Of a stretch of DNA of 64,000 nucleotides, positions 9,966 through 50,777 are shown piece by piece. The DNA is from Gnetum montanum (Eukaryota > Plantae > Gnetophyta). Every line of letters begins with the position of its first letter. Position 1 is the stretch's first letter. The notes under the pieces are model-generated. The model was not told the DNA's origin and made no database searches. It saw only the letters and a program-made list of their open reading frames with translations. Position numbers and translations under genes: made by a program. The stretch spans positions 390,105 to 454,104 of the forward strand of contig MNCI01002585.1 of NCBI GenBank assembly GCA_015680685.1. The letters are read 5' to 3'.

Positions 9966-10049
9966 AAGATCTTTAAGCTATTCTTGGTAACAAAGACTTT
10001 TCTCTTGGTGTCTCTTGTAGTGCTTGCTTACCTTTAGCTTTCTACTTGT

Positions 10050-11300: not shown

Positions 11301-11403
11301 TTATAAGCTTTTCATTATTCATGAAAATATTGGACAAAACAAATAATTGTATAATAATTTATTCTATCTTTCTCTTAGCATGATATATATTCTTATTGGC
11401 AGG

Positions 11404-12275
11404 TGATGAGCAGTTGGGTATTTTAACACTCAACCTTACAAGTCATGAGTGTTCACATGTGAGTCGATTGTAATATATGGATGGATAATGTAAATATACT
11501 AGTAGTTGATGTTCTATTTGTAATCATTATATTCTCACATAGAGTTAGTGAAGTGCAAGTTGTATGGTTTAACTCTTATTGAGATATATGATATGATGAT
11601 GTTGTTTGGCTTGAATTAAGACTAAATGCGGTCATGGTAAAAAGGATGATAAAGTCAAAGCTAAGTATGACAGAAATGTAAATCTATTCTAGTTTATGGT
11701 GATAAGTATTCATTCCTAGCTTGTTGTACACATCTTGGGCTAATGCAATTTCCATTGGGATTACAATTAAATTTACTATTGATCAAATTAAGTAAGGTCA
11801 CCATTGGATTATCAAAGAGTTAAAGGTTATGCTTGAAACCAATTGTACTTATACTACCTTACTAAAGAACATTGGAAAAATAAAGTACTTAAAAAATGTA
11901 AAGGACTTCATCAAAGGAAACATGCTTAAAAGTAAAATTAAACTAAATGAGATGCTACAATGGTGAGAAACAATCTTGATCTTTATTGTCGATCATAAAT
12001 TGTATCCAAGAATAATCCAATCAAATAAAAACTTCATACAACTATTAATCATCACAATGTGGGCATTTACTCTAATTCTAAGTTATGAAAATAATCTACA
12101 AAAATTTGGCCAAGTGTTCGGAAAAGTTATTCTGTTGTCATGATGGTGGATTGATATTTATAGGCATGAACATGGCCCACTACATTGCATCTATGATGAT
12201 GTATGTAAAGTTACCATGTCATAACTATAATATCATAGATACGGTATCGCAGGGTACATAACAAAGGTTTTATCA
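11404..12275 (-). mobile_element. 3' LTR of an older Athila-like element (same broad family as D)
   Basis: TGATGAG...TATCA termini. Internal blocks such as ACACTCAACC and GTACACATCTTGGGC match LTR 46531-47323. The adjacent TATCCCCTCAACT is the minus-strand PPT, as at 47324. Confidence 0.8.
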
Positions 12276-12539
12276 TATCCCCTCAACTAATTGAAAACTT
12301 GTCCTTGAGTTAAAACAAAAGGAGGATAGAGTTTCTTTGCAAAATTGATGGGGTTATATATAGACTATGATACTATGACATATACATGATTGACTCTATT
12401 ATGAATGCCACATTGTGATTCAAGTGGTGTTTACAAAATTATCATGCATTGCATGATTGATACATATGACAAAAATGAATCAAAACAAAACAAATTAAAA
12501 TAAGTTTGATGTAGTCTTTAGGTTCCAAGTGGTGATAGC

Positions 12540-14256: not shown

Positions 14257-14259
14257 TGG

Positions 14260-15169
14260 GTTTAAAATGTATATAAGTTACATGCTTAGATGCATAAGGA
14301 GCTATACGGATGATGCTTGAAGTTAGGTAAAACTAGCGGATTGTGTCTTGCAATTGGTTTCTCAATCCAAGTGCTTCTAAGCCTTAGCTAACAACACTCC
14401 TTGTTGGTTCCTAGGTACAGGTCTGCTGCATTGATGTTGAAAATATGGTGGAATGATAGTTAGACTCTTAGTAATGTGCACTATGCTAAAAGTTGCAATG
14501 TTCATTCCTAATGCTAAAAAATGTTCAAAATGTCAAGAGTCCCCTCAATATGTTTGAATGTCCTTTATATAGGCTACATGGTTGTTGATTTGATGTTGTC
14601 AATCCTCTACCATAATTATTGATAGATTGATTCAATTTGTAGGTGTTGTAGATTCTTCATGCCGAACGTATCTTTCAAATTTGGTAGGTTTTATGAAAAA
14701 CATGTTGGTTTTGTCTTCTCCTGGTGAAAGTACATTGGCTTTAGCTTCTTCCAACACAAGTACACTAGCCTTAGCTTCTTCTAGAAAAAGTACATTGGCA
14801 TTTGATGTGCTCTAGCATAAATACACTGGATTTGATGTGAACATTGAAACCCATGAAATTAATATGCTGGCTACAAGTTGTTCCAACATATTAATTGCCA
14901 TGGCCAATATAAATGCCACAAAAGCCCAAATTTGGCAACTTCCAAGGCATTTCCAACCTTCCAAAGCTTAAGTCCATACTTAATATAGTCTTTTTCACTT
15001 GGGAAGTGAGGTGACAACAACTTATGAGGCATTTTTTAACCTTAATAAGTTAAAGTATGTGCAATTAGAGTTCATGAACTACAAATTGTACAATTCACCA
15101 CAAAATCTTGCCTCAATTTCAATAGTGAAGATCATGAGTTGTAACATGAATTTTCTTAGTGGTGTTTTA
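14260..15169 (-). mobile_element. Truncated 3' LTR of minus-strand Tat element Z, with PPT at ~15170-15183
   Basis: Reverse complement reads AAAGAGGAACAAA|TAAAACACCAC...GCCTCATAAG...CCCAAGTGAAAAAG, homologous to the PPT and LTR start of B (58128-58330). TATA-like GCCTATATAAAGG near 14565. The distal end is not identifiable. Confidence 0.7.
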
Positions 15170-16079: not shown

Positions 16080-18122
16080 TAATGTCAACTATTGATGGCC
16101 TTGTTACTAGCATCAAGTTGTCCATTGACTTGAGGGTAATATAGTGATGAAAAGAAATGCTTGATGCCTATGTATTGATAAAAGGCTTGGAATGCTTAGT
16201 TACTAAACTATGGTCCATTATTTGTGACTATGGTCAAAGGTACACCAAAATGGGATACTATGTTATCTAGTATGAATTTATAGACTTGTTGAGATATTAT
16301 CTTCTTTAAAGGAATGGATTCAACCCACTTTGTGAAGTATTCAATTGTAGTGATGATAAAGATATGCCTCGTAGAAGACTTAGGTGTTATAGGTCCAATA
16401 ATGTCAAGTCCTTACTATTGAAATGACCAAGTTATCTGAGTAGTGTGTAACTTAGTTGGTGGCACATGTATTAGGTTTCCATTCCATTGATAGGTATAAC
16501 AAGTTGTAACCTTCTGCAGGAAGTCACTCTTCATATAATGCCAATAATAATCTAGTCATATAATCTTTATGACCATGGCTCTAGGTTCTATATGTCATCC
16601 ACATACACCTTTATGAACTTGCTCTAGGATTATGTGGGCATTAGTTTTATCCAAGCACATTAATAATATAACATCATAGCATCATCAACATAGTGTGTTA
16701 TCACCTATAATAACATACTATTTTGATCTTTTATGTACAACATCCTTTTGAGAAGTAGTCAGGCCCTGTGAAGATTCATAATGCATTAGGTAAAACTTGA
16801 TATTGTCATACCATTCTTTTTGAAGAGCAGTATTAATAGGGGTTATAGAGATGCCTTTATTGTTTTACATAATTGAAATAGAAAAATTCATGGTTAAGGA
16901 AGATAACTTACTAAACACATCAAGCATCACACTTAGGACTAAGGTTGTGATGGCATCAGCTAAGGTGTTCTTGGTTCAAGTTATATGTTGGATACTAATG
17001 TCTATAAATTGTTGCATCAGTTTCTTAGCTAAGTCCTAGTAAGGCTATAAATGTTTGGGTTTACATGAATAAACCTTTATTACTTAGTTAACCACAAGTT
17101 TTGAATCACCTTTGATCATCAGGCATTTGATTCCTTGGTCACAAGCTACCATTATTTCCTGATTAATCTTTCATACTCCAGCACATTTTTGATGCATGAA
17201 AATTCAAAATGGTATGTGAAGGGTTCTGATGGTGGAAACACTAGGTCCATGGGCAGTTGAAGCTTCATCAAAGTGCATGATAGCCTATAGCCCTTAGGTA
17301 CCTCATTAATAATGTTGACATGTTCATTGGAAAACTCAGGGTCTATGGATGCATGGTCTTCTACTAGGGAAGTTGTGAGTTGTGTGGCTATAGCTTGCCC
17401 TTTTATTGAGGCTTTGGAGATGTAATGTAGGTCAAACTTAGCTATTATGGATTTCCAACCGTTTATATGGCTACTTTCATAGATATTGGTCTTTATGGCT
17501 CTAAGCACATTATCTTTGCATATGACATTAACATGGCTTTATAAGAGGTAGTGTCTCCACTTCTTCAATGAGAAGATTAGGGCTAGACAATACTTCTCTA
17601 CTTTGATGTATTAGGCCTCATAGGTAATTAATGCAAGGCTTAGGTAGTATACCGGCAGCTCTTCTCCATCATTGTGTTTTTGATAGAGTAGAGCAGTTAT
17701 GGATGCATTAGAGATAGCTACATAGATGTAAAAAGGTTTTTATTTTATGGTGGATAGACCATGGGTAGTTGTACCAACTCTTGCTTAAGGTTTTTAAAGG
17801 CTTCTTAGCATTAAGCCATTCACTCATAGTGAACTCCTTTCTTAAGTAAGTGTTACATTGGTTGCAACTTATCCATAAGCTCAGTGATGAACCTATGGAT
17901 AAATTATAATCTACCTTGTAGTTCTTAAAGCTCCTTAAGGTTTGTAGGTGCTGCCAAGTTGGATATGGCCTTAACCTTATCAAGATCGACACGAAATCCT
18001 TTCTTTGAACACTACAAAGCCAAGCATCTTATTAGTTTTGGTGCCAAAGACATACTTTTTAGGACTAATCTTGAGTTGATATTTAAGACATCATTTAAGC
18101 ACTAAGTCAAGGTCATGCACAT
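16080..18122 (-). pseudogene. Tat pol remnant (RT C-terminal part, RNase H, archaeal-type RNase H, integrase core) of element Z
   Basis: AKFDLHYISKASIKGQAIA, YHFEFSCIKNVLEYE and YYPQVNGQ..NKAI; collinear with 55310-57360. Cut at 18122 by element A. Confidence 0.9.
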
Positions 18123-19837
18123 TGAAACACCATGAAATTTCAGGACCCTGATGCTTCAGCAAAGTCTTGAAATTCGGGCAAGGACTTCCATAAGTGCAGT
18201 GTCACGATGGTCTATCCGGACAACGTAAGCATTGAGGGTAGACCGCACAGTCCGGCAGCATAACTATAGCGTGGCAGGGATGTACTTTGATAATACTCCT
18301 ACATGAATAGCTCCGATGGAGTAAAAGTGTTTGCCCATGTTTCAACTGTTAAACAGGTTTGCTCTGCTGACACACCGGGACATGACAAACATTCTATGAC
18401 AAAATGTTTGCAAAACAAGTCAGGATTCGGCCAACACTGGGTGCTACGTTGTGCTATGCTATGCAACGTAGCAAGGACAGAATGCACAAAGGCCCATTTG
18501 CCAAGTGGTTCCAATGAGAGGATTTCACTTGGTAACGCTTCGACCTCCAAAACTACCTATCCCACTTAGCCCTTAGATCTCAAGCAAAGTTTCCTAACAA
18601 AACATTGTAGACCGAACAAGGATGCATGTCATATTGGTTGCTCCATTGCATAGCGTAGCGAGGATGAAAAACAACAAAATGCCCCAACGATGAACTCAAT
18701 AGGTCTGAAGGATTTCCAACATGGAAGACAAAGTTGCAGTTGCTTGCTTAACCAAGCCTTAGGCAGATTCTCTCTGCTTTTGGGCAAGACTTCTTTCAAG
18801 ATTGACGGTTACGCTATGCTAGGCTACGTAGCGTAGCACAGTGTAGCGTGCAATTACTTAAACTACGCCAACATGCTGGACAACATAAGTAATGTAACAC
18901 TTTCATGGAGGCATTAAGACATCTTCAGTTAGCTCTAGAACTTGTTGGCAATGATCACTCTCACCCTAGCACTTCTTTGGTGGACAAAATCAGCAAGTTT
19001 GCTTCATTTTGCACACCTCTGGTCAATCCCTAAAGTTGTTCCTACGCTTGACCTTGCTCACAAAAGTAGGGAAGACATAGTCTTGGAGCATAGGTTCCAT
19101 TTTTCTTTCATTGTTGGTATGCTTTTTGAATTTTGGCACATGCAATTTTAGCGGTATGCTCATAGCATAGCAGCAATACACAGCAGAATAACACAGTCAC
19201 CTTTGAACTCTGTGGGACCCAGGACATGTGGAATCTAAACCATGTTTTTCTCCTGCATTTGGCTCTATAAATACCCTAGTGAATAATGTTCAAAGGGTTG
19301 GCTTTTGGAGAGCATAGTTGGCATTATTAGTATTCTGGTTGACTCCAGACATCCTTTTGTGGGTCTAGCATTTTGGCACCTTGGTGAGCGGATTGGCAAG
19401 CAGAAGAATCCTGAGTAGTGAGCTATTGACTATAGTTCAAAGACCTGTGACCATACTGCTCTATTGTAAGTTGTGCCACTCTAGTGTTGCATATTTAGTT
19501 GTACGCTTTCCAATAGAACAAAGATCAGATTTGCCATCTTGGGGTGGTGCATTTTCTCACCCAAGTCTATTTTATTCTTTATTTACTATCATTGTTTTTT
19601 GCACTATTTTTATTGTCTTGCATTTGTTGATCATCGCTTCACTTGCATACGTTTCTTCTAAAACAAATGTTTACGAAATGTTAAGTTACACCAATTAAGT
19701 CCCTGTTTAATTGATTAGATCATTTAGGGCACCCCATTTCTGTTTCTCTCCAACATGACCATCGCATGGATCCAGGGTTAGGCTGTATGCCTGGCAACCT
19801 CTCGGTGTTCCAGCCACTGATGTTTTCGGTCGTTACA
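18123..19837 (+). repeat. 5' LTR of element A
   Basis: TG...CA ends. Aligns to 35567-37583 (ORF-track twins 18942/36764 and 19381/37182). TATA-like CTATAAATA at ~19266. Confidence 0.92.
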
Positions 19838-19842
19838 GTTTT

Positions 19843-19860
19843 TGGTGCTAGAAGGAGGGC
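19843..19860 (+). promoter_or_regulatory. Putative primer-binding site of element A (TGGTGCTAGAAGGAGGGC)
   Basis: Lies just after the LTR end; identical to 39945-39962 in element B. Confidence 0.8.
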
Positions 19861-20514
19861 CTTTTTGGTGCCCTTTCTACATATTATGGGTAATCTTGCA
19901 CGTTGTTTGTACCCTGTCACCTATTAGTGTAGACATGACACCCTTGTAGTTGTTTACGCATCATGTGATGCAGACTGGGTGCAATGATGGTTACTTTGGA
20001 ACCTGGAGGGATGAGAAGCCTCCGATTACTTATCAATTTCCATGTTTCTCGTTGACAATTTTCCTTTAATCACATAAAATGATTCCTGCAACCATTGTCG
20101 TTCCCACCTTGAACCTTGAGGTTCCTTTCTTGGCTCAAAACACCATAGGTGCCGAGCGACTGCCTAGCCTAGTGTTGGCGCAACGTTAGTCTCTTAGGCT
20201 CCGACACCTGTCACCTGAGTGCTTGGTGCAAGACGCAGAGCGCTATGACTTCCTCTAAGCAAAGATCCAGGTGAATTTGCTCTTGGATTGCCAAGAACTC
20301 GAAGAAAAATATAACTTCGAGTTCCTTCATCGAAACAGGAGGAAATTTATCCCTAACCATCCACCTGACGGAAACATATCAATGGATTTTGGACTAGCTA
20401 ATATGAGTCAGTAATTCTAGGGAGCGAGATACGGCGTCCCATTACGATGAAGTGTTTGAAGATGGATAGAAAGACCTGGACTTCCATTCCGAGGGTGGTG
20501 GCCAAACCTAGCCT

Positions 20515-23500
20515 GTGGTTATCCCTTCCACCACGGTCTTCCGGTTGAACCCGCTCTTTGCTTCTGCCCCCTTCATGGTTGCCACAACCCTGTCACAATC
20601 TACACATTTGTCAGTCATGGCTAGTCATCTCGTACCTTCTACGTACCAACAAGGGGTCTCTTCAACTTTGTTCCTAGTCACACTTTCTTCGCAATTTGCT
20701 CTAACAACGTACCCAACGTTAATCATGGCTACATTGCCATACGTCCACACTCTGCCCACGTCTCAGTCACATGCGAGCTTCGCCTCTGGTCCCTCGTCTA
20801 CACATGTCCCACCACCAGTGGCCAACCCAGTCTCAACCACGTGGTGGGTGCCAACCCCTTCCTTACCTATGGGACAACCTTCTTAGGTATCATACTATGT
20901 GCAACCCCAAGCCCACTAGCTTCTTCATGTAGCACAATCTAGTGCAGGGCTATGGGCCGTCCTACTAACCAGGAAAGTTATCAACCCCACGACCCCACCA
21001 ACGGCCACCCCACCAATAGCATCACCCATCGGGTGGTGGACGGCCTAAGCAACACAATTCGCAGGAGCAGCACCAACAACGTCCCTCATGGCCTAGGTTT
21101 CTGCCCTTACACTGCAACCCCCACTGACACATATGATAGCTGCTCATGCAACCTTGCAGTCATCTACAACATCACCAGGTTTGGACCAAGCTTTTCAGCT
21201 AATCTAGACCCTTACTGAGGAAATTAAATGCCTTAAAGTTATCGATTCTGACATGGTACAGGTCATAGACTTTTACCACGACAATCCCATTAGCCTGACT
21301 GTCCCCATGCTTACGTTACCCCTTGGGGTAGAACTCCCCCAATTTATGAAATATAATGGGGAGGGCAATCCCAACGCACATTTAGTAATGCTTAGATCCA
21401 AGTCTTTACTGTTGCAACAATAGCTGCATACTATCATCTGTGTCTTCACCATGTCCCTGATGGACAAGGCTTTAGACTAGTACCACGCACTCCCACGCAC
21501 GTCCATCTCAACTTTGAAGGAGCTACTGAGTCAGTTCATGACCTGTTTCAAGTATAACTTGAAGTGAGAAGTCACACTCGACCAGTTGATGAGTGTCTAA
21601 CAAGACCAACTCGAGTTTGTGCAAAGATTCATACAGTGGTGGAGTGCCACCTTGAACAAAATACGTGAGCCTATTGTTGAGGCCCATTTATTGGCCATCT
21701 TCAAGGGGGCAGTAAATGACTTCATTAAGTCAAAAATTTACTACCTAGCTCCATGCTCTCTTAGCCAAGCCTTTGCTCAAACTAAGAGCATCTAGAACGT
21801 AGCTGAGGCTAGTAAAGACCCAGCTTATAATTACATATAAAAATGCACACCTTAAAAAAGATAAAGAGAAGGGTAAAACCGCAACAGCCATGGTGGCTGA
21901 TGTGGCTAACAAAGCCAAGTCCAATAATAGCAATAACCCAAAGGTAGCCACAGCACCCGCTAACGCCACATCTGGCTCAAGTAACACTAGTCAACCCTCA
22001 ACATTAACACCTGAGGTGCCAACCCAACCTAAACCCAACTTTGAGTGCAAGGATCGCTCCAAATATACCTCTTTACCTGTTAAGCCTTTAGAACTTCTGA
22101 AGCAACTGTTGGAAGCTGGGTATATACAGCATAAACGGATGTCAGAGGAAGCGATTAAATGTCATCAGCGATACTACGAACTCCTTAGGAACCCCTCCTT
22201 GGCTATGCCCAATGAGGCGCCAATTCCTAACAACTTTAGGCTAGAATGGTTCTGTGACTACCATCAACTATGTGGTCACGATACAGACTATTATGTAGCG
22301 TTGAAAAATAATATCCAACGCATGATCGATTAGGGCAAGCTGGTCTTAGACGAAAGTAGTCTTGTTTGCCTAGACAATCAATCCATGCATGTGTACAAAG
22401 ACCCCCTGAATGCCAAAACATTCAAGTGCCTCTGACACACAATGCCAAGCAATGAAAGCAGCACTGTAGCCTTGCCGTTCGAAAAAATGGGAAGAGCATT
22501 TGGCTGACAAGATGGCTAGGGAACGTACTGCCTTAGGTCCCCCCAAGCCTACCCCCTTGTCCTCAATGCCTATGGCCACCTCATTATCAGCAATTGATAA
22601 TGCCATGCACATGCAATCATCACCAGCCTACCCAAGAAAGCCTAGTGCATAACTTGAAATTGCCCCCCCTCACGAGATTCATCTCCTAAGATGAATGGAA
22701 GAGGAAAAGTGTGGCAAACAATAAGATGGTAGACAAGATATTTTCAACACCCTCAACCAAGTCAAATAGGCTTTGAAACAGAAAAACAAAACTTTGAGCT
22801 TGTATGATTTGGTAATGACTTCTACCACGCACTGCGAGGTCATGGTTCACATGTTAACGTCTATACTAGTTGATGAAAACATGCCAATAGAGGAGAAAGC
22901 GATCCATGCTGTCATGCTTCCCTCCACCATTGAGGAACCACCGTTGGCTTAGTTAAAGTTTCTTGATGAGTCCATCAAGGACAACCTTGAAAAGGGTCAG
23001 GGGACAACAGCACCCATGTTCATCACAATGCGGGTCAGTTAGTACAAGATTCGAAGAGTACACGTTGATGACAAGGCTACTACAAATGTCATCCCGTTTC
23101 CTATAGTGGACAAACTAGGTTTGGTTGATCAAATCAAGCCCACAACAACCTCTTGCCTGAAGTCATTCAATAGAGCTTGGGTAGTGGTAAAGGGAACTGT
23201 CCACATCAACTTTGTGGTAGGGGACTAGTTCCCCACAAGCGCGGTGTTCATTGTGATGGAAGAGATGCCTGGGTTTAACCTGATCTTGGGGAGGTCATGG
23301 TTAGCCCAATTAAGGGCTGTCTCTTCACCCATACATCAAGAGATCCACATACCTTACGTAGGTAGAGAGGTGGTGATCTACGGTGATGAAGTGGCTGCCC
23401 AAGTAATAAACAATGTTGACATAGAGCAAGGTTCAGAGGTAATAATCTCTGAAAATGAAGCGTCTATTCCTACTAAGGCTACTTGTTTGACTAATGAGCC

Positions 23501-23651
23501 GACCAAAGATGCCGGCTTAGAAAAGGAAACCATGTGGGCCAAGTTACCTTTTCAAGTGATAAATAACAACATAGAAGAATACCGCAACAAAGCTCTTTGG
23601 CCATATGCTTCACTTAGCCCACAATGGGTTAAGAAAAAATTGCATAATTAG
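20515..23651 (+). pseudogene. gag-protease of element A
   Basis: Pro/Ser-rich N-terminus; KYNGEGNPNAHL gag core; CDYHQLCGHDTDYY Tat-type knuckle; protease RVHVDD..TNVIP and FNLILGRSWL. Many stops. Confidence 0.88.
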
Positions 23652-23900
23652 AAACTACCCATGATTCAACTTCATAAACGCTTGGCTTTGTTATCTCCTC
23701 CCTAATATTAGCATCACGTTTACTGCTCACTATGTTCACTTTCAGCATTACCATTCCAGTTTTCACCATGCTTATTTCTTTTGGCATTACATTTAATGTT
23801 TACATTATTTTAATTCTTTGCACCATGTCCATTGCTTGCATTCGGATTGTGTCTCCTGTTTACATTGTTCCCACCGTTTACATTACAATTGTTGTTAAAA

Positions 23901-24190
23901 CGGCCTGGAATGACCTTAAACTACCACTGTGGCCTACTAAGGCCTAAAACTGGCCATTCAAAAAAAAAAAAACATCCTTATCACTTGTTACGACCCGAAA
24001 TGACCTTAAACTATTGTTACGGCCTGGAATGGCCTTAAACTACTACTGTGGCCCGCTAAGGCCTAAAATTGGCCATTCCAAAAAAAATAAAAATCCTTAT
24101 CACTTGTTACAGCTCCAAATGGTCTTAAATTATTGTTACAGCCCAAAATGGCCTAAAACAAGTAATGGCCTGAAATGGCCTAAAACTAGA
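23901..24190 (+). repeat. ~119-bp tandem duplication built on the G(A/G)CCT(T/A)AAACT motif
   Basis: CGGCCTGGAATG.CCTTAAACTAC at 23901 and 24020, plus partial copies. Confidence 0.85.
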
Positions 24191-24360
24191 ACGAGAAGCT
24201 CCCAAGGAGCTTAAAAAGACAAAGAATAAAAATAAATACAACACGTTAGCCAACATGAAATAAATCTCTTCACACTATATTCTTTATTCAATATGAATCA
24301 ATAATGTTTACAAAATTTTTTGTAAATTCAAAGACAAGAATAAAATTTCCCGCCGTTACG

Positions 24361-27300
24361 CTATGAGTCTTCACCCGCATCACCATTCCCTGCCTCATTG
24401 GATCCTGCATTTTTGTTTGCATCCTGTGCAACAAAGAAAATAAAACAATCAATTAAAGCTACAACAAAGGCTTTTATAAAATAAACTACGATACCCCAAA
24501 AGGTAACTAACCCGAAATGGCCCCGTGTCCATTTCGGGGGGTATTCGATCCATGTCAACCGTAAAATGTTACAGGATCTCCTCCTTAGCGATGTTGGCCC
24601 AATTCCTATCCCCTAGATTAGCGCTTGCTGCAACCTTATCCTTTTTCATAATTGTCCATCTAGGTGGCTTTGGAGAAAAGGTGGTAGTGCTGGTCTCACC
24701 CATAAGTAGAGTCATCTCCCTTTCGGGAGATTCACTAACTGTCACCTATTGCATGAACTTGTCATAAGCCCCAGAAGCACCAATAATGTCAAGGAATAGC
24801 TCATGGGTATGCAACTTGACTGAAGCATCCCGATATTATTTGAAATACATGGAACATTCTATTATATATATATGTTTGTGGTTCTTCTGTGCCTACCCCC
24901 ACTTGTAAACCTTCATGCTATAATCCTTCCAGTCTTGGTTCTTCTAGGCTAGAAGGTCCATTTGCATGCGCTGTTCGATTATTTCGCGTGTGGCTTCATT
25001 GTTGCATCATATGATCGTCTAATATCTTGTGTAATCGATGAAAGCTGTATGCCAACTACCATCGTGAGTGTCCTGGGCCAACAGAAATTCATTCCAAGAT
25101 TAGAGATCCCCCACCTCAGCAGTTAGGTTGGCCTTCTCCTTCTCAATTCTTTGCACTTGTTTCTAGAGATCTTCGTTCACACGCCTGCACTCCCATAGAG
25201 AGCGTTCTAAGTACGACACACATTTACTTTCTTTATCATATATGTGACGAGGTACTTTGGTTACCTCCAATGGAAATTCGGGTACGACGTCGACCTCAAC
25301 CACCTGCTTGGGATTCCACTTGAGGTGAGAGGTTGCCAATTGCACACAGAAGGGCATTAGTCATAGTGACATAGTGAAATTGCAACAATGTAGAAAGCGC
25401 AGCGTAGCAACTTTAACTTACCAATTTTCAGATCGATTTTTCTTAGACGATCGATCATGTCATCAACCACCCCTTCCATAAAAGTGAATTTGTAGATAGT
25501 CTTAGTCCATGGTCGGAGACAGATTGAAGAAGGACCAGGAGTATCAACAGTGGTGTCTGCTGCACAATAAAATGTGTTATCCACGGTGGAGAGGATTACA
25601 ATAAAGCTGATGAACAACGTAAATGACAGTGTAAAGCTCCTACCTAGCAAATCCTCAAGGGTGATAGCAAGGGGNGGGTCGCCCATTGACACACTGTCAA
25701 ACAAGCGGTCAAACTCACCAGCGTCAAATTGGAGCCCCTCTCTTTCTAGCTAACTCAATAGTGTAGCAGCGTCCTCAACACTCATATGCCCCTCCGGTAC
25801 TAAACTATAGTCGGAAAAAGGATCATCAACAAGGGCCTCTTCTTGATCAACAGAGGCCTCTTCCTTATCGGCAGGGGCCTCTTCTTCATTGGTTGGGGCC
25901 TTTTCTTCTGTAGCCAAGGCCTCTTTGTCTTCCCCGATCACCCCTGTTCCAGGGGCTAGAACCTCCTCCTCTCCTTCTTCTTCTTCCTTTGCTAATAAAA
26001 CATAATTACAGTAAGCAAGATACACCAACTTGGAATAGATGCTACATTGTGCAACGCTACCTAGCATAGCACAACGTAGCAAGCGTTAACCAAACAGTCA
26101 AACACACTTACCAATTGGGGGCTGCACTCTACGAATTTTGAGTCGTAGCTTCTTTCCCCTCTCATCATTTGTACAAGGAGGCTCTTCGGTAGGACGACAT
26201 TTCTTACATTGCAACCTAGTCTTCACTATTTCTGCAATGAGGTGTTCTCCCCTTGACATGCTGCTTGTGTTAATGGGGGGTGCCTCTCCCACATTATCCT
26301 AAGCGCAAAAGGGACGTGCCACCTGATCCATTGTCATTATTGAAAGCGATTCCCTAATAGCCTCCGGGTGATCTTGGGATCCTGTGGTATGGAAAACTTG
26401 GCAAATCCATGGCTTTGATATTTAGTTACAATCTTGCTATACCCAGATGCCATTTTCACAGACCACCAGAAACTCTGTAAAGCACCGTAAGCAAGCTATA
26501 AAAAAGCTGTAGTGTACGTTGAAACGAGACTCAAGCTTCTCACAAAGCTTGACTATTTCAGCACGTAAGTCTTCAGAAAGGTACCGGGCCTAGTTATAAT
26601 GGGTCACTTCCTCCATGACCTTCCTCATTATCTAAGCCTGCTCCATCCCAAGGATATGCCCTTAGGAGAGTAGCTTAGGGAAAGCACGGGCACGGAAGAT
26701 AGGGTAAATCCTTTCGACCACCACTAGCTTGACCTTGTGGATGTAAATTCCTTTTCGGTGCTTACTTATCCCTAGCCACTCCTCGATGTCTCCCTAATGG
26801 TTCACATCTTTCTTAGATTTTTCTCCTACAGGGAGACCATCAGAAAGGACACTAAAAATATCTGCAAAAGTTGGTCATTAATTTCGAATACCACCCGCAC
26901 ACCGTGAAGACGTGTACGAAAGCGGTTAGCCTTGTCGGAGAAGGAATCGGCTAGGGGAAGCATTTATGCAGTCGGGACATTCAGATTTACAGCCAGAAAT
27001 AAGTCCATGAGCCTAGCCTCCTAAATGTTGTGGACAATGGTGGCTGGGGCCCCATTGTAGAGCCAACGTTGAGTCTCCTCCACCTCCTCGTACTTGAAAA
27101 AGAGGTTGGTTTCATTACGCCCAGAGGTGATCATAGTGACCTCTTTGGATTTTGTTATCACTATAACAGTTAGCAAAACACAAAGAAAAAGTTAGCAAAA
27201 AAAATGATGAAAGCACATCGTCACTTGAACACATAACAACGAATCCATGGCTTTGCATACCAGGTTTAAATGGCATAGGAAATGGTGGGAGTTCCACTAG

Positions 27301-29316
27301 CACATCTTCAACGGTAAGCAGTCTGAGGGATGCTCACTTCCTATTCAACCAACCAGCTTCCTTACACTTTACAGAAAAATTGGAATACCTGGTTGGATAG
27401 GTTTTAAAGTCAAGCCTAAGTTGCCATATAACACCAGCACACACGTTCTCGGTAGAGGAGAACTTCTGCAAGGCTGTCTGTGCCAACGCCAAGGCATCTA
27501 TGTCACCGTGAAGATCATTCCCATCAATATAAAACCCAATAATACACAAAAATACAATTAACACCTCTATCTAGTGTAACATAGATTATAAAACATGTTA
27601 AGATACCTCCACAAAACTCACTCGCTAGCATAGTAAATGGTTCCAAGTGGGTTCAGAAAACAAGTGCCCATGTGATGGGCAATGTATACTGTGTTATATA
27701 AGTGATAGAATTTGTACTTAGGCATGTCCCAGATCCAACTTAAGCACCTCAAGCCTCTTGGGCACTGGTTAAAACCTTCTATACCTTCGCCTTCAATTTC
27801 CCCATCATCCATGAACTTCAGAATGCCCCAGTTTGCCCAGGGCAACAATGTTTCTGTAATTGTGGTTGCTATCTTGGCTGATAAGTGTGACCACATGATC
27901 ACACTAAAATGGTAAGGAGGAATTGTAGGAAGTCACGTGCACCCTCCTAGAACCAGACCACCTGCTGCCCCACACATGCATGGGGAGGATGGACGTTGGC
28001 CATAGGTTCACTAAGGCAACATAAGACTCCTACAAGTTTAAGGATAATCAAGACAGGTTTAAACATGACCCTGCATGACAAAGCATCAAATGTTAGCACT
28101 GTGTTCAAGTAAGGTTTACATGTAGTGTAGCGTGACCCTCTATTTATATGTAGCATAACATGATCTTCCGACTATGAATCCCCCTTTTAGCATGAACTAA
28201 GGAGTCTCCCAATGAACGAAGGTAAACATTGCATGCAGCGTACTAAAAAAAAAGAGTTGGGAGTAGCGTAGCATAACGGTTAAGTCTAATGTAACATAAC
28301 AATAGTGGGTGCATAGCACGATGCGACAGTTACATGTTACATAGAACAATGCAAAAGACATACCTAACAAAACATAGCATAACAGCCAACACTTTTGCAT
28401 AAGGATGGCGGCTATGTCACGCGCAACATAGCAAGATGAATACACCATACGCAACATAATGTATAATAAGAAGAGCACTATAGCCGGCATCGCGGCATAG
28501 CAAATTTGGCAGTATAACAAATTTAACAACGTAGTAGCACTACAAGCTTGATAGCGTAGCAATATGACAGATTGCTAACATGATGGCCTAAGGGCCTCAT
28601 AGCATAAGCAAAGTAATGTAACAACAACAACCTTATAGTCTAACTGTGCAGACGAGAGAGAATTCACAGTGCCCCCACCGTCCCAACCCTACCTTGCTGA
28701 ATGAAATAGCTCATGCTACACTATGTGAAACATGCATCACGTTGCCATAAAAATTTTGCAAATAACTAAAACCCTCTAAGGGAGGCACACTATGCCAAGA
28801 ATGCTCTACATCACCCAGAACTACCCAAACCCCTGTGACAATGCATTTTCCATTCTTTACAATGGCGGCTAGGGCAAGACTGCATGTAGTTGTAGCGTAG
28901 CACCTATACGGTTGCTGTGGCCAACTAGTGATGACCACGACGTAGCGGCCAAAACGACAACCAAAATAGTGTAATAGATGCAAACATCACCACAATAACA
29001 ACAACAACAACATGATCCGATTCATCAACTAAAGGAAATAAGGATAGCATAGTGACTTATTGAGCTGATGGAGCCTCTTGTTACACTTCAACGCATGCCT
29101 TGGACAGGCATCTCAGAGTGTCCTTCACCTTGTCTACCTTGGCAAGTCCTTGATGCCTGTGTTCGCCTTTAGATGCCATTGTCTTGCTCGTGAATTGTCT
29201 CTGTCAACTGCTACGCTATGCTTGTTACACTCTATCTACTCGATCATGCTATGCTCTGGGTGTGAGCTCTGACAATGAAAGTGACAAGTTTACTAAGGGT
29301 TAAACCCCTATTTATA
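24361..29316 (-). pseudogene. Antisense multi-exon accessory gene inside element A: FCP1/NIF-like HAD domain, PMD/plant-transposon-protein-like domain, acidic repeat, coiled coil
   Basis: Predicted exons 28070-27622, 27535-27261, 27160-26112, 25991-24512 and 24423-24361. Introns are GT..AG (one acceptor reads GG) and keep frame at the junctions. TATAAATA at 29316-29309 and AATAAA at 24288-24283. Exons upstream of 28070 are unresolved; stops and frameshifts are present. Confidence 0.8.
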
Positions 29317-29499
29317 GTTGACATGGTAAAACACTTGCCACTTTCATGTTTTGATTAACGCAGGACATCCCCTACAACATAGCACTATTGCACCGTAGTC
29401 CCACTATAGTGTAGCAATTATCTGCACCATAACAGGTGGGCCCACCAAAAATTTTTACCCCATCTTGTCACTTTATCTTTACAAAATCTACCTAACCAC

Positions 29500-29760
29500 G
29501 GTCCATAAAGACCTTAAACTAACAATTTTGGCTTTCAATTCTACCCAATAACAGTCTGCAAAGACCTCAAACTAGCAATTTTAGCCCACGGTTTAACCCG
29601 ACAATGGTCCACCATGACCTTAAACTGGTAATATCAACATTTCTTTCACATTTTAAACCTGGTTATGATCCACCATGACCTTAAAATGGCAATTCGAACA
29701 TTCATTCTACAAGCTATTATATTATCACGGTCTGCTAAGACCTTAAATTGGCGATTAGCT
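29500..29760 (+). repeat. Cluster of GACCTTAAACTGGC-like motifs
   Basis: Copies at ~29510, 29563, 29617, 29677 and 29739. Confidence 0.8.
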
Positions 29761-29906
29761 TATGTTGCATTATTGATTTACACATGTTTCTTACATGTTA
29801 TTTCTTTAAATAGGTATCACTTGACTTGGTTTATTTTCTTGTTGAAACAGGTCAACCCGAAAGATAACTATACAGGGTGATCTCTGTTTGCCTTTGACCT
29901 TAACAG

Positions 29907-32900
29907 GTCCCTACGGAAAGTGTACAAGAAGTTTGAATCAAGAATTGATAAACTTCGAGTTATCTTCTCACAACACCTTAGCGTCCCTGGAAACATCCCT
30001 AGACCTGCCTGAACATTTGGTATAGGCCTTAGACTTAGAGGCTGGGGATGTGACTAAGGACCCTCTTATTGATATCCCCATAACTACAACTAAAGGTGAA
30101 GAAAAAAATCTGAAAGTTAGCTCTCTATTACACCCACAGGTACACCAAAACATTGCAAAGGTTCTCCATGATGTTAAAGTGTTCGCATGGTCATATGATG
30201 ACATGCCGGGCCTAGATCCATGGCTTATACAACATAATATTATCCTAGATCCATGTGTTAAGGTAGTTAAGCAAAAAGCCCATAAAATCAAACTGGAGAT
30301 TGCATTAGCTGTACGTGATGAAATCACCAAGCTTTATGAAGAAGATTTCATCTGGGCGGTCGATTACTTGGAATGGGTTTCAAACATCATTATAGTTTCT
30401 AAGAAAATGGGAGGTATACAAATTTGTATAGACTTTCGAGATCTAAACAAAGCAACGATTAAGGATGATTTCCCATTACCAAGCATCGATAAACTCATAG
30501 ACACTACGGCTGGTCATGCCTTACTGTCGTTTATGGATGGGTTCTCAGGCTATAACCAGATCCGTATAAACCTAGAGCATTAGTTGTCAACCACCTTCAT
30601 GACCCCTTGGGGAACGTTTTGTTATACAATGATGCCTTTCGGACTCAAGAATGCTGCAGCAACCTACCAATGAGCAATGACCTATATTTTTAGTGACTAC
30701 CTCTTGGAGATATTAAATGATTACGTGGATGGCATAGCATTCAAGTCTAAGGAAGCTATTGATAATCCCAATGAACTAGATGTAGTCCTCAAACATTGTC
30801 ATAAGCATGACTTGCCTTTCAACCCAAAGAAATGTGTTTTTGGGGTTAAAACCAAATGCATGCTAGGGTTTGTAGTGTCGGAGATAGGGATATGAGTGGA
30901 CCTTGATAAAGTCAAGGCCATCGTTAACCTAGCATCGCCTACCAACCTTAAAAAAATTGCACGGGTTGCAAGGAAGAATATAGTTTATTAGAAGGTTTAT
31001 AGCGAGGTTGATAGATAAGTTACGTCCCATGAAACACCTGCTTAAGAAAGGGATCAACTTTGAGTGGACAGAACAATGTCAACAAGCTTTTGATAACTTA
31101 AAGAAAGAGCTTTTGCACCTCCCAACTATTTACCCACCACAGAGGGATAAGCCTTTCTACATCTACCTTGCCACTTCGGACACATCTATTGCAACATTGT
31201 TATGTCAGAAGAAAGATAATGGCTTTGAAATCCTGGTTTACTACTTGAGCCACACACTAATAGCTTATGAGGCAAAGTACAACGAGGTAGAAAAATATTG
31301 CCTTGCACTAGTGTTTGCACTAAAAAAGTGGAGACATTACTTGTTTCGCAGCAAGGTCAACATTATATGCAAGAGTAACATACTTCAGGCTATCACAACA
31401 ATCTTGTACGAGAGTAGTAGGATAGCCCGATGGAAAGCTATAACAGCAGAATTTGATTTACATTATGTAGGCCAATTATCAAGAAAGGGTCAAGCAATAT
31501 CTACACAACTTACAACTTCACCCATTGACGATCAGGCAATAATAGAACTTGAATTCCCTGATAAACACATCAATAGCCTAAGCCCTGTACCATCTGATTT
31601 TGAAGAAATTCTACATTTTGATGGCGCTGCGACCACACGAGGTGGAAGTGCCACCACAGTTATTACTTTCCTTTAGAGGAAATTCGGCCCTTTGCATATC
31701 GCTTTAGGTTCCTTTGTATGAACAACATGGTTGAGTATGAAGAACTTCTTATGGGTCTCTTAGTAGCCCAAGAGCTAAAGATCCAACATTTGGCAGTTTG
31801 GGGAGACTCGCAATTAGTGGTTAATCAGATCATTGAAGTCTACGCTTACAAGGCTTCACATTTGCAACCTTATTGTGATCTAGCTAAGAGTTTTTTGAAA
31901 TAGTTCACAATGCTAGATATCCAACATGTGCCTCACAATGAGAACACCATAGTAGATGCGCTAGCCACTTTAGCATTGAACGTTTCACCACACATGTTTG
32001 CTACCTTGCCTAGTTCGATAAAAGAATGCATAGACCCTATTACTCAAGAGGTACACATCGCAGTTGTTAGTATGACAGATATCCAAGAATGGTATGCAAA
32101 CATTAAAGCCTACCTTCAACATGGAAAACCCCCAAAAGGCTTGAGATCTGCTCAGAAGGATGCAATTCGAAAGCGAGCTTGGCAGTATGTCCTTATAGGA
32201 GATAACACCCTATGTAAACACTCCTTTGATGGGATATTGCTAACTTGCATTGGTGAGGAAGAAGCATAGAAAATTATTAACAAAGTTCATGAGGAACTAT
32301 GTGGGGAACACATAGCCCCTAGGCTATGGCAGTAAAAATCAAATGCCTAGGGTATTATTGGCCTTACATAGAACAATATTGCCTCGCGAAAGTTAGGACG
32401 TGTGATGTGTGTCAACATCATGCAAATATCATACACGTGTCACCTACTGAGTTACATCCTACATAGATCATGTGGCCATTCCAATGTTGGGAACTGGACA
32501 ACATAGGACCCATCACACCTAAGTCTTCCAGAGGTCATAGCTTCATCATCACTACAATTGAATATTTTACAAAGTGGGTGGAGGTTATCCCCCTTAGGAA
32601 GACTACATCTCAATAGGTTTGCCACTTTATCTTGGATAACATAGTAACAAGGTTTGGTCTTCCCATGACTATTATGATAGACAACGAGCCACAATTTAGT
32701 AGCGTAGAAGCCAAAACCTTTTGCAACAACCTTGACATCAAGATATCCTTTTCATTGTCATATTACCCATAGGAAAATGGTCAAGTAGAGGCAAAAAACA
32801 AAGCCATCATCAACCTGCTCAAAAAGATGCTTAGTAGCAGTAAGAGGCGATGGCATGAACAAATCCTCTACGTGTTGTTGGCCTACTGTACGATGTGCAG

Positions 32901-33330
32901 AACGACCACAGGTAAGACTTCCTAAAGCCTTGTCTATGAATATGAAGTGGTGTTACCTCTTGAATTGTAGGTTCCATCACTTCGAATGATCCTTTTGAAT
33001 GTTGTGAGCGAGGCTTAGAACAACGAGTCAAGGATCATTGATCTTGACTTCGTAGAGGAGGAGCAAGCTCAAACACTCAACCTCATCGAATGGTACCAGG
33101 ACAAGTAACAACAAAAGCACCACTACAATCTACATCAATGGTCAATCAAAAAAGGGAACCCAGTTCTCAAGGCTATTCCTGAACATGTAAACAAATTCTC
33201 AGCCGACTGGGAAGGCCCTTTTGTAGTCATGAAGGCCTATGAGAACGAGGCCTTCAAACTGGCCGATATGAATGGCAATGAGTTTGCGAATCCTATCAAT
33301 CATTTGTATTTCAAGCCATACTACGTCTAA
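29907..33330 (+). pseudogene. pol (RT, RNase H, archaeal-type RNase H, integrase) of element A
   Basis: [54 protein letters not shown] and the integrase HHCC/core; ends FKPYYV* at 33330. Confidence 0.95.
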
Positions 33331-33374
33331 CACAGGAGTTACATGAGGTACTAAGCAAGGTAAGATAATCATTC

Positions 33375-33620
33375 GCTATGACGTAAAACTGGCACAGATA
33401 GTCCACTATGACTATAAACTGGCACAACACATCCTTGGGCTATGACGTAAAATTGGCATCCACAGTTTGGTCTGCTATGACCTTAAACTGGCCCATCCAC
33501 CATCCACTATGATGTTAAACTAGCATAGCGGTTTGCTAGGACCTTAAAATAGCACATTACAGTCTGCTAGGACCTCAAACTAGCACATTTGACAGTCTAC
33601 CAAGACTTTAAATTGGGTTC
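33375..33620 (+). repeat. Tandem ~30-35 bp units CGCTATGAC(C/G)T(T/A)AAACTGGCA downstream of integrase
   Basis: About 8 consecutive copies visible. Confidence 0.85.
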
Positions 33621-34711
33621 GCATTTCAATGCTGACCAGCCCACATCCACGACCCTATAAACAAGTGAGCATGCACAATGCCAACTATCTAGACAACATG
33701 GGGTGGCACATTGCAGTTCCAGAATGTAGTCCACATTGCCGAGGGAACACCCTCTAGAACACATGCAACGTCATTGCCCCTGGCATCTTGCTGATCTTCT
33801 GGAGATGTCATCTAACATCTTGCTGACCTTCTAGAGCTACCGCTACCACAACCACTCATCTCAATGATAGCTCTTGCCGTCAACACCTACTATTGGAGGC
33901 CTAGCACTATTGTGGTCCACCCCACAAGATTGCCATCCTCCAGCCCTCACCATTTTCCAAGTCCAAGATCCGTTTAGCTATTAGGCCTCTCACCTTGCAG
34001 CTGGATTACATGATGTTTACCTTGGGCAAGGAATTCTAAGCACTTGCATTGCCCTCCCTCTCAATCAACTTGACCTCCTTTCTTATACTTATAGTTTTTC
34101 ACGTCTCCTTTACAAGCTTCCTTGATGCATATAAAGCCCTCCCACATGCCCAACTGCCAAGTCCATGATGACTATAACATAACTCACCTCATGGGAAGCA
34201 TCTGTAGGTAGGTCAAAGCCGCACATGGATGTAACACAACTCATCTAGGGGAGAAAACACCTATCCTGCAATAGTAAGGTTGTCTACAAGTGAACGTGGC
34301 TGAATAACAAAAGGAAAACACAAAAAGTGCAAACGATCAGAATAGCTCAAAAAAAATGGAACAAGTGCCCAAAACAAATGGCACCGCAGTTGTTTCAAAA
34401 TGACCATCTCTAAGCACTCTGAGGAGAGGTCAAAAAGGCCAACAAAGAAGGATGCCCATGCGTGCATTGACTCCATCACAAGCATTCCGATGAGGGACCA
34501 CACTATGTTACATCTTTTCCTTCCTTGAACCTGTCCCCTCAAATCCATCCTTGTCCTGTTCCCTTACTCGACTATCCCAATACTCACAAGTGTAGCAAAG
34601 CGACATATGAGTGACCACTAGAGAGCAATGTTAGCATTTTGTTTTTCATGGTGTTTCGTATTCTTTGTCGACATCTCTTGGGCATATCCTCCAGACATCA
34701 ACAAAGAGGGG

Positions 34712-35557
34712 TGATGAGACGCGAGATGTACTGGGCCGCGATATCGCNNNNNNNNNNNNNNNNNNNNNNNNNNNNNNNNNNNNNNNNNNNNNNNNNNNNN
34801 NNNNNNNNNNNNNNNNNNNNNNNNNNNNNNNNNNNNNNNNNNNNNNNNNNNNNNNNNNNNNNNNNNNNNNNNNNNNNNNNNNNNNNNNNNNNNNNNNNNN
34901 NNNNNNNNNNNNNNNNNNNNNNNNNNNNNNNNNNNNNNNNNNNNNNNNNNNNNNNNNNNNNNNNNNNNNNNNNNNNNNNNNNNNNNNNNNNNNNNNNNNN
35001 NNNNNNNNNNNNNNNNNNNNNNNNNNNNNNNNNNNNNNNNNNNNNNNNNNNNNNNNNNNNNNNNNNNNNNNNNNNNNNNNNNNNNNNNNNNNNNNNNNNN
35101 NNNNNNNNNNNNNNNNNNNNNNNNNNNNNNNNNNNNNNNNNNNNNNNNNNNNNNNNNNNNNNNNNNNNNNNNNNNNNNNNNNNNNNNNNNNNNNNNNNNN
35201 NNNNNNNNNNNNNNNNNNNNNNNNNNNNNNNNNNNNNNNNNNNNNNNNNNNNNNNNNNNNNNNNNNNNNNNNNNNNNNNNNNNNNNNNNNNNNNNNNNNN
35301 NNNNNNNNNNNNNNNNNNNNNNNNNNNNNNNNNNNNNNNNNNNNNNNNNNNNNNNNNNNNNNNNNNNNNNNNNNNNNNNNNNNAGACTTGCTTAACCATA
35401 CACCATGACAAATACAAGCAAGCCTGGGAAGACAACGAACGATTCACCCCAAGCATTTCTTGTGGTGTTAAGGCATTTAGTCTGCGGATTTCGACCGGAT
35501 CACGCGTGCACGCTCGTATTCGTATGGTGGAGTGTAGGGGTACCTCACCACTCATCA
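34712..35557 (+). mobile_element. Athila-like LTR insertion (probable solo LTR) with AGGGG TSD, inside the PPT of element A
   Basis: AAAG-AGGGG|TGATGAG...CTCATCA|AGGGG-CCAT-TGAAAC. The 846-bp span is close to the D LTR length. The middle is an N gap. Confidence 0.85.
34748..35383. other. Assembly gap (N run)
   Basis: Run of N. Confidence 1.
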
Positions 35558-35566
35558 AGGGGCCAT

Positions 35567-37583
35567 TGAAACACCATAGAATTTTAGGACCCTAATGCTT
35601 CAGCAAAGTCTTGAAATTCAGGCAAGGACTTCCACATTTGTAGTGTCATGATGGATTGTCCGAACAACGTAGGAACTAAGGGTAGGCTGCATAGTCTGGT
35701 AAGTTTTCTATTACCCGGGCTGATAGGCCTGTTGGACTCTCTAGCCTGCCCAATTGGACAATTGACCCAGCTAATAGTCTACCCAGGGACCATGCTAAGA
35801 GTTGTCAAAAGTGTTCAAGAAGAGCCAAACAGTTTAGCAAGTTTTCTGATTGCAAAACCTGCTACGCTATGCTACGCTGCATAACATAGTAAGCCTTAAG
35901 GAGATTAATCAGACATCCAAGATGCAAAATGGTAACAAGCCAGTCTTCTAGAGAATTTGCCCTATTTTACCCCTGAAGCATGAGTGATAGGTCGCAATAG
36001 AATGTGGTGAACTTTGTCAAGAATCATCTCAATTTAAGTGCTACGCTATGCAGCGTAACACAGTGTAGTGGGGATGTACTTCGATAACACTCCTACGTGG
36101 ATAGCTCTGATGGAGTAAAAGCATTTTCCCATGTTTCAATCATTAAACAAGTTTGCTTTACCAACACACTGGGACATGAAAACATCCTATGAAAAAATTT
36201 TGTAAAAAAAGTCAGGATTCGACCAACACTGGGTGCTACGCTATGCTATGCTATGCAACGTAGCACAACGTAGCAAGGATAGAATGCACAAAGGCCCCTC
36301 TGCCAATTGGTTCTAGTAAGAGGATTGCACTCGGTAATGCTTTGGTCTCCAAAACTACTTGTCCCACTTACCCTTCAGACCTCAAGTAAATTTTCCTGAC
36401 AAAATACTATAGACCGAACAAGGATGCATGTCATATTGGCTGCTATGCTGTGCTACGCTGCATAGCGTAGCACAATATAGTGTGTATGCAAAAAAAAAAA
36501 ATGCTGCAAGGATGAACTCAATAGGTTTGAAGGCTTTCTAGCATGGAAGACAAAGTTGTAATTGCTTGCCTAACCAAGCCTCAGGCAGATGCTCTATACT
36601 TTTAGGTAAAACTTCTTTCAAGACTGGCGGTTACACTATGCTACACTACATAGCGTAGCACAGCGTAGCGTGCAATTACTTACACTACGCCAACACGCTG
36701 GATAGCAAAACTAATGTAACACTTTCATGGAGGCATTAAGACGTCTTTAGTTAGCTCCAAAACTTGTTGGGAATGATCACTCTCACCCTAGCACTTCTTC
36801 GGTGGACAAAATCAACAAGTTTACTTCATTTTGCATACCCCTGGTCAATCCCTAAAGTTGTCCCTATGCTTAACCCTACTCGTAAAAGTAGGGAAGATGT
36901 AGTACTGGAGCATAGGCTTCATTTTTCTTTCATTGTTGGTATGCTTTCTGAATTTTGGCATATGTAATTTTAGCGGTATGGTCACAGTGTAGCAGCAATA
37001 CACAATAGAACAACATGGTCACCTTTGCACTTTGTGGGACCCAAGACACATGGAATCTAAACCATGTTTTTCTCTTGCATCTGGCTTTATAAATACTCTG
37101 GCGAACAATGTTCAAAGGATTGGCTTTTGGAGCGCATAGTTGACTTCAGACATCCTTTTGCGGGTCTAGCATTTTGACACCTTGGTGAGCAGATTAGCAA
37201 GCAGAAGAATCTTGAGTAGCGAGCTATTGACTATAGTTCAGAGACCTGTGACCATACTGCTCTGTTGTAAGCTGTGCCACTCTAGTGTTGCATATTCAGT
37301 TGTACACTTTCCAATAGAACAAAGATCAGATATGTCATCTTGGGGTGGTGCATTTTCTCATCCAAGTCTATTTTATTCTTTGTTTACTATCATTGTGTTT
37401 TGCACTATTTTTATCATCTTTCATTTGTTGATCATGGCTTCACTTACATACATCGCTTCTAAAACAAACATTTACAAAAGGTTAAGTTACACCGATTAAG
37501 TCCCTGTCTGATCGACCAAACCGTTTAGGGCACCTTGTTTTCGTTTCTCTCCAGCACAGCCCTCGCACGAATCCAGGGTTAGG
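35567..37583 (+). repeat. 3' LTR of element A, truncated at its 3' end
   Basis: Aligns with 18123-~19783; similarity stops at CCAGGGTTAGG. Confidence 0.9.
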
Positions 37584-38431
37584 GTAAATAAGGTGAGCCC
37601 AAGATCAAATAGCATAGAATGAGGCCAAATGAAGGCCCAAATGATGGCAAATGTGACCAAATGATGATTGAGCCTAGTCAAATGACATTAAGTAACGTTG
37701 AAAAAGGTCATACTGATGTCCAATGACAAAATAATGTCAAATCAAGTTAACTAAGGTCAAATGATGCCAAATGATAGAAAAATTTGATGCAATAAGGTCA
37801 AATGATGTGAAAATAAGGAAATACAATCAAATGACACCAAATGGAATGACAATAAATGTCAATAATATGTAACAAGGTCAAATTAAGCTAAAACACAATG
37901 GAACTAGGTCAAACCAGTCAAGGTGGAAAACATATGGTAAAATAGGATTAATATTAGTTAATCAAGGTTACATTTTACCAATTTTAAGCATTAGCAGGCA
38001 ATGGTGGAAGGCTACAGGGTTGATGGAAGAGTTTGAGCACTTGGTGAGGTTATTTAAAGGCTATTTGGAGGAAAAATGAAGTCTTTTTGAAACAATATGC
38101 TGGTCCTCTTGAAAAATAAGTTGGCTAGTGTATTTCATGTAGGCTTTAGAATATTTTTTAATGCAATTTAATTTTCAAGGTTCATTTGGACCATTTTTTG
38201 GGTTCTAAGGTTTTGAAATGCTAGCATAGTGGACTGGGAATAGGAATTTGTTGATTTTGATGTCGATTAGAACTCTTGAAGTCATTGCATGCTTCCAAGG
38301 CTTGAAAAATGCATTGGCCAACATATCTTTCTTAGGCCCTAGTGTATCTTTTCAAGAAAAATGGATTCGTGAAGTGTTAAACATGCAATTTTGACTCTAG
38401 GAGTCTCCCAGGGCTACATAGGGGTGCTAGT

Positions 38432-50756: not shown

Positions 50757-50777
50757 NNNNNNNNNNNNNNNNNNNNN
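50757..50777. other. Assembly gap (N run)
   Basis: 21 N. Confidence 1.

Follow-up and report, generated by a model that had tools for sequence, protein, structure and literature searches.

A 64,000-nt stretch of the Gnetum montanum genome (contig MNCI01002585.1, positions 390,105 to 454,104 of the forward strand; hereafter the window) contains an old Ty3/gypsy retrotransposon, element A, in which the gap between the gag-protease open reading frame (ORF) and the region encoding reverse transcriptase (RT) probably holds a decayed accessory gene that lies antisense to gag-pol and belongs to the element family. This multi-exon gene, referred to together with its surroundings in the gap as the cassette, is real, is a feature of the family and is dead at this locus; it is a variant of the known class of extra ORFs in retrotransposons. 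An antisense, intron-containing gene at this place had been proposed in an initial annotation, and in the literature we examined, whose coverage of the field is incomplete, we likewise found no described case with this layout.

The gap was delimited by comparison with a sister element in the window, B. The two elements are colinear at the protein level (tblastx) from the protease end (Table 1) to the start of RT, where A 29987-30547 corresponds to B 45957-46520, and the interval between protease and RT is ~6.3 kb in A (23651 to 29987) versus ~0.95 kb in B (45009 to 45957). The gag-protease ORF ends as initially placed, at ~23650, with its stop codon at 23649-23651. For the RT side, where coding had been said to resume at ~29907, an acceptor-like cag|G is indeed present at 29905-29906, and RT homology to B begins at 29987. 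Judged by its sequence, A is an old and now dead member of the Tat clade of Ty3/gypsy elements (Ogre-like), with a pair of long terminal repeats (LTRs), domains from gag to integrase, the gap between gag-protease and RT, and a second RNase H (RVT_3, PF13456, 31622-31900, E 8.4e-8, 32.6 bits with a cut-off of 21.6) located between RNase H and integrase, a position at which an additional RNase H-like domain is the mark of the Tat clade (PMC6317226, PMC4408406). Pfam also matched RT_RNaseH_2 (2.9e-27) and, weakly, RVT_1 in the pol region of A; rve was matched weakly in the integrase counterparts of B and of a reverse-oriented pol fragment, Z, and Retrotrans_gag weakly in B's counterpart of the A gag region.

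The cassette could be examined for traces of coding because its first three exons recur, strongly diverged, near the end of the window (copy 2). The A cassette and copy 2 share seven colinear tblastx blocks comprising 235 codons over the first three exons (sum E 6e-24), with ~51% DNA identity in the matched blocks. Identity at the first, second and third codon positions was 0.55, 0.64 and 0.345, third positions being near saturation, and the BLOSUM62 sum on the same ungapped blocks was 423 in frame versus -50 and -72 in the shifted frames. In A-B controls, RT and RNase H gave the same frame pattern as the cassette, whereas the LTR control did not. The blocks were picked by protein score, which introduces some ascertainment bias; even so, the size of the effect points to a protein that was once under purifying selection. 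The acceptor of the third exon lies at an identical codon distance and in the same phase in A and copy 2, and this conserved intron position, together with the codon-position pattern, indicates that the cassette once contained a real coding gene. We also noted that A (26966-26961) and copy 2 (63900-63905) have, at corresponding codons of the alignment, an in-frame stop with an ATG immediately after it, although the stop codons differ. The coincidence has a chance of roughly 0.09, and the arrangement could reflect two coupled ORFs instead of one.

The signals expected of such a gene were largely where they had been placed. The minus strand has both TATAAATA at 29316 and AATAAA at 24288, and the acceptor ending at 28071 is AG in A and in copy 2. 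Three of the four proposed introns (27260-27161, 26111-25992 and 24511-24424) run from GT to AG, are 62-70% A+T and have pyrimidine tracts; the fourth, 27621-27536, lacks an AG acceptor in this copy, and position 27537 carries another letter in most family contigs. At the three junctions quoted initially, the neighboring ORF pieces join in frame. The exons fared less well: as proposed they yield no open frame, and 25991-24512 (1480 nt) comprises more than one exon, with at least one clean GT..AG stretch (25643-25560, 84 nt) inside it, further gtaag/gtaac donors at 25421 and 25264, and candidate introns that start at 25421 and span 25264-25207. This decayed state is consistent with the 15% divergence between the two LTRs of A.

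The start of the predicted protein resembles NIF/FCP1-type phosphatases. For an intact 80-amino acid (aa) piece of copy 2 (62747-62986), the only Pfam match was NIF (PF03031; 14.1 bits with a gathering score of 21.8, E 0.039), covering profile positions 34-71, the expected part of the profile. The ESM Atlas assigned the same piece to NIF in 30 of the 30 best named clusters (score 0.93, 191 of 256 features shared, recognition 4202), a result to be taken as a lead and not as an alignment. Where the DxDx(T/V) motif should be, both aspartates are replaced by hydrophobic residues or Lys/Glu in A and in copy 2, as read from the translations. The best reading of the first domain is a NIF/FCP1-like pseudo-phosphatase without the catalytic aspartates. 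Other homology searches, in which the exons of the gene were used separately, gave little. Across 36 stop-free pieces of A and copy 2, Pfam returned only the sub-threshold NIF match and a few unrelated weak ones, with no match in any piece of the A cassette and no Transposase_28 among the cassette pieces. A word-based protein search with the 80-aa piece of copy 2 and a 130-aa piece of A found no relative; the same search with the RNase H piece found relatives at 33-39%, too distant to yield sister elements. The PDB sequence search was blank, and searches of viral and metagenome contigs found no related locus.

The cassette is not confined to this copy, in agreement with the initial proposal. 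In a public DNA run (X1), 19,122 contig pieces matched 24100-30099 at a likeness of at least 88%, mostly being 90-95% alike. Summed contig depth, which the tool cautions against reading as a copy number, was 1,400-14,700 over 24300-28100 and ~5,000 at the RT start, compared with ~8-10 for window-identical or single-copy pieces, and all bins of the 6-kb cassette were multi-copy, the junction regions included. Since the depth of the cassette is comparable to that of RT, we consider it a feature of the family rather than an isolated insertion. Over 28100-29100, summed depth fell to 58-650, far below the rest of the cassette, suggesting that this stretch, from the TATA box to the first confirmed acceptor, is either fast-evolving or subfamily-specific. 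The most repeated part of the cassette was 24700-25099 (9,800-14,700), though its minus-strand frames are full of stops.

Two short motifs connect the cassette with the rest of the element. The 10-mer TAGCGTAGCA (at most one mismatch) occurs 28 times in the window, compared with 1.4 expected. All but two of these occurrences are in A: 20 in the LTRs (three of them in the stretch found only in the 3´ LTR), five in the upstream region and putative introns of the cassette, and one in the integrase region, with spans at 18267-19172, 35860-36660, 25400-26071 and 28264-29416 and none in B. The upstream stretch 28100-29100 is rich in the 10-mer, which may be a regulatory motif common to LTRs and cassette. 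Arrays of a second motif, with core GACCTTAAACT, are found on both sides of the cassette, and the motif also occurs at 33380-33617 in A and at 45560-45602 and 57928-57999 in B, always in the sense orientation; it has a single occurrence in the short gap of B and is found again 3´ of integrase in both elements. These direct repeats around the cassette could mediate its loss.

In the explanation that we favor, the gene runs antisense to gag-pol, has a TATA box and a poly(A) signal of its own as well as several short introns of plant type, and once encoded a protein that opened with a NIF/FCP1-type HAD pseudo-phosphatase, continued with a larger middle domain and closed with a tail that was acidic and coiled-coil-like. 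On the sense genomic RNA, the introns and the poly(A) signal would go unrecognized and would thereby survive reverse transcription and be copied with the element; that the introns would persist because the gene is antisense rests, like the splicing model that follows, on general retroelement biology. The gene would be placed where Ogre elements have a facultative intron, and if such an intron were used here, spliced RNA would give rise to Gag-Pol, and the gene would be carried by the unspliced form. A putative activity of the protein would be directed at expression of the element itself or at silencing by the host. A more far-reaching version strikes us as possible, though doubtful: in a Tat lineage, the protease-RT intron would have come to house a functional antisense gene that has a promoter and introns of its own and encodes a NIF/FCP1-type pseudo-phosphatase, perhaps fused to a domain resembling the plant mobile domain (PMD), that acts on RNA polymerase II or host silencing for the benefit of the element, and TAGCGTAGCA, which is repeated both in the LTRs and upstream of the gene, could couple the two promoters.

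Several observations weigh against a family-borne accessory gene in the gap. This copy is no longer a gene, having dozens of stops and frameshifts: the best frames of the proposed exons hold 5, 1, 13, 15 and 0 stops, and a frameshift is required within exon 1. The NIF match is below the gathering score, a phmmer search with a 104-aa piece of A against 1.84 billion representatives returned one spurious tandem-repeat protein, and the depth from which we argue is a sum over contigs. A PMD reading of the middle exon (27160-26112), suggested initially, was not supported: PF10536 was not found by Pfam in 26 pieces of A and copy 2 at E values up to 10, the ESM Atlas gave no usable match for the presumed PMD piece, and one motif resembles the domain by eye alone. 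Sense splicing of the gap also meets difficulties. A canonical GT at 23628-23629 is a candidate donor, but a join of 23628 to 29907 is out of frame with RT in this copy, since the donor exon ends in phase 0 and the RT frame needs two nt fewer at 29907; B shares the pyrimidine tract but has no AG at the place aligned to the 29906 acceptor of A. Three RNA runs (~1.9 billion nt read each) gave no RNA support, which says nothing about silence in other tissues: each yielded 20-87 matching reads, nearly all of them partial matches running on into unlike sequence, which clustered on the repeated motif and of which none spanned a junction on either strand. Ten RNA molecules of run X10 start at 24936 on the plus strand.

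The remaining difficulty, the context of copy 2, bears on the most serious alternative. We were unable to assign copy 2 to any element. The initial annotation had Z continue past A and B, such that copy 2 would lie in the protease-RT gap of Z, a placement that found no support: 37584-38431, where Z should continue, has no RT homology, and A has no recognizable target site duplication (TSD). Near copy 2, within the window, there are neither GACCTTAAACT-core arrays nor TAGCGTAGCA motifs. The coding signature could therefore stem from selection on a host gene rather than inside elements. A NIF-like host gene might have been captured once by the family ancestor, antisense and with its introns, and have been a functionless passenger since, copy 2 being the selected host paralogue; LTR elements are known to transduce genes (PMC11963269). 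We consider this unlikely, given that copy 2 is itself stop-broken and sits among nested retrotransposons, and that the cassette has been kept at high copy over its full length.

Less probable still, in our view, is an insertion of an unrelated mobile element or stray piece of DNA into the gap of this copy alone, with no connection to the family. No terminal inverted or direct repeats and no TSD belonging to the cassette itself were found; moreover, the junction regions are multi-copy like all other bins, the non-coding parts of the cassette share the LTR-type 10-mer, and the whole is embedded between two arrays of an element-typical motif. The short, cassette-free gap of B would fit an insertion, as would one X1 contig that joins 24189 to 29498 and skips the cassette, although this contig has just 22 nt on one side and both of its sides are the same repeated motif. 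A purely non-coding spacer, expanded and containing ORF pieces and splice-like signals by chance, is the reading to which we give the least credence and is already disfavored. It would explain why stops are alike on the two strands (202 vs 194), why the longest open stretches differ little (130 vs 93 aa) and why Pfam matched no piece of A, but not the protein-level chain to copy 2 with its near-saturated third and 64% identical second positions, the conserved intron position or the NIF features. A decayed accessory gene carried by the family is the explanation that we prefer.

Table 1. Coordinates of the antisense gene, its second copy, the host element and neighboring features in the window
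Feature	Position	Strand	Remarks
Upstream region	28071-29316	-	TATAAATA (TATA box) at 29316; AG acceptor ending at 28071
Exon with NIF/FCP1-like domain	27622-28070	-	One stop and one frameshift in this copy
Intron	27536-27621	-	GT donor; acceptor dinucleotide not canonical in this copy
Exon 2	27261-27535	-	One stop; C-terminal tail of NIF-like domain; aligns with copy 2 over 55 aa (31% aa identity)
Intron	27161-27260	-	GT..AG, 100 nt; acceptor position and phase as in copy 2
Large middle exon	26112-27160	-	Heavily decayed, 13 stops in best frame; first 290 nt conserved with copy 2
Intron	25992-26111	-	GT..AG, 120 nt; contains LTR-type TAGCGTAGCA motif
C-terminal part	24512-25991	-	Acidic low-complexity stretch, then stop-broken pieces; 21-nt tandem repeat at 25825-25908
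Intron	24424-24511	-	GT..AG, 88 nt, 70% A+T
Last coding exon piece	24364-24423	-	Open, ends in stop; in frame with upstream piece across intron 24511-24424
Poly(A) signal AATAAA	24283-24288	-	~75 nt past the last stop of the gene; sole AATAAA inside the cassette
Copy 2 of the first three exons	62750-63992	+	Very diverged, also broken; runs off the window end
Motif array, 5´ side of cassette	23897-24188	+	27-31-nt unit, core GACCTTAAACT
Motif array, 3´ side of cassette	29495-29750	+	Same GACCTTAAACT-core motif
Pyrimidine tract and acceptor-like site	29886-29906	+	GTTTGCCTTTG (common to A and B) and cag before the RT frame
Element A	18123-37583	+	LTR pair and internal Ty3/gypsy domains
5´ LTR of A	18123-19782	+	Begins TGAAACA; blastn to 3´ LTR 84.5% over 1.56 kb
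Gag region of A	21143-22416	+	Decayed; tblastx colinear with B 42285-43511
Protease-bearing end of gag-protease ORF of A	22761-23651	+	Matches B 44119-45009 in tblastx (44% over 297 aa)
RT, RNase H, second (archaeal-type) RNase H and integrase of A	29987-33327	+	Decayed; Pfam; tblastx to B and Z
3´ LTR of A	35567-37583	+	Begins TGAAACA; ~350 nt more than 5´ LTR; purine tract just before
Element B (sister of A)	38432-59631		5-bp duplication CTAGT at 38427-38431 and 59632-59636
Younger LTR element inside RT of B	46531-55044		LTRs 46531-47297 and 54277-55044, 91% alike
Reverse-oriented pol fragment Z	16086-18123		Ends exactly at the start of A

Self-comparison of the window revealed an architecture of nested Ty3/gypsy elements. 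In contrast to the clean duplication flanking B, no matching 5-mer was found on the two flanks of A, which hints at a rearranged flank. Element A contains an assembly gap (636 N at 34748-35383), and the 177-nt stretch between this gap and the 3´ LTR (35384-35560) recurs at 178-354 with 91% identity. The region 10051-14227 is related to the internal part of the younger element in B. We also observed a pair of direct repeats (712-1750 and 8565-9936) that are ~7.85 kb apart and 75-77% alike, the latter including a 182-nt tandem repeat at 9386-9930; the pair probably represents the LTRs of another old element.

In plant LTR retrotransposons, the accessory genes known otherwise are all uninterrupted ORFs at one or the other end of the internal region, and surveys that rely on ORFs being long, continuous and at the 5´ or 3´ end overlook genes of the kind described here. 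If the reading is correct, retrotransposons can take genes with introns through reverse transcription, the giant size of such elements would be accounted for in part, and a dead phosphatase-like protein of the type that acts on the C-terminal domain (CTD) of RNA polymerase II would become a testable candidate for the handling of host transcription or silencing.

The closest parallel for the position is found in Ogre elements, which have a facultatively spliced intron between gag-protease and the RT-RNase H-integrase region (Neumann 2003 and Steinbauerova 2008, as cited in PMC6317226). As in Ogre, A belongs to the Tat clade, its gag-protease is one ORF that ends in a stop and is followed by a non-coding gap, and a pyrimidine tract and AG precede RT. 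The gap in Ogre averages 274 bp (PMC6317226), whereas that in A is 6.3 kb long and holds a gene on the opposite strand, and splicing in A is putative. For the gene itself, the nearest relatives by type are the extra ORFs of Tat elements, which encode a PMD and a coiled coil (Ustyantsev 2015, PMC4408406; Steinbauerova 2011) and are continuous ORFs located at the 5´ end in sense orientation (Ogre) or at the 3´ end in antisense orientation (lineages III and V) (PMC4408406). They too are accessory coding regions, antisense in some lineages, and the tail of the A protein is acidic and coiled-coil-like. Unlike them, the gene in A is interrupted by introns, occupies the interval from protease to RT and has a NIF-like start, and a PMD was not detected in it by Pfam. 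Retand, Grande and RIRE2 have antisense accessory ORFs, mostly Transposase_28, between pol and the 3´ LTR (PMC11963269). There, an antisense accessory gene is likewise a lineage-wide feature, and that of Grande has its own promoter, but these genes are downstream of pol, whereas the gene in A is upstream of RT and has no Transposase_28 match.

Two host protein systems invite comparison with the predicted product. The plant PMD proteins MAIN and MAIL1 partner with the phosphatase-like PP7L, and PMD-PP7 fusions exist in MAIL3 and VvMAIL2.2 (PMC7156037). Only if the PMD reading were true would the A protein similarly combine a phosphatase-like module with a transposon-type domain, in parallel to a host module that regulates the silencing of transposable elements; the phosphatase fold differs (PPP there, HAD/NIF here), the known cases are encoded by host genes and not borne by an element, and the PMD is putative here. 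The NIF/FCP1/SCP CTD-phosphatases (PF03031) are matched by the predicted protein in the sequence features of the N-terminal half and in the order of motifs, but differ in that the score is under the Pfam cut-off and both DxDx(T/V) aspartates are replaced in A and copy 2.

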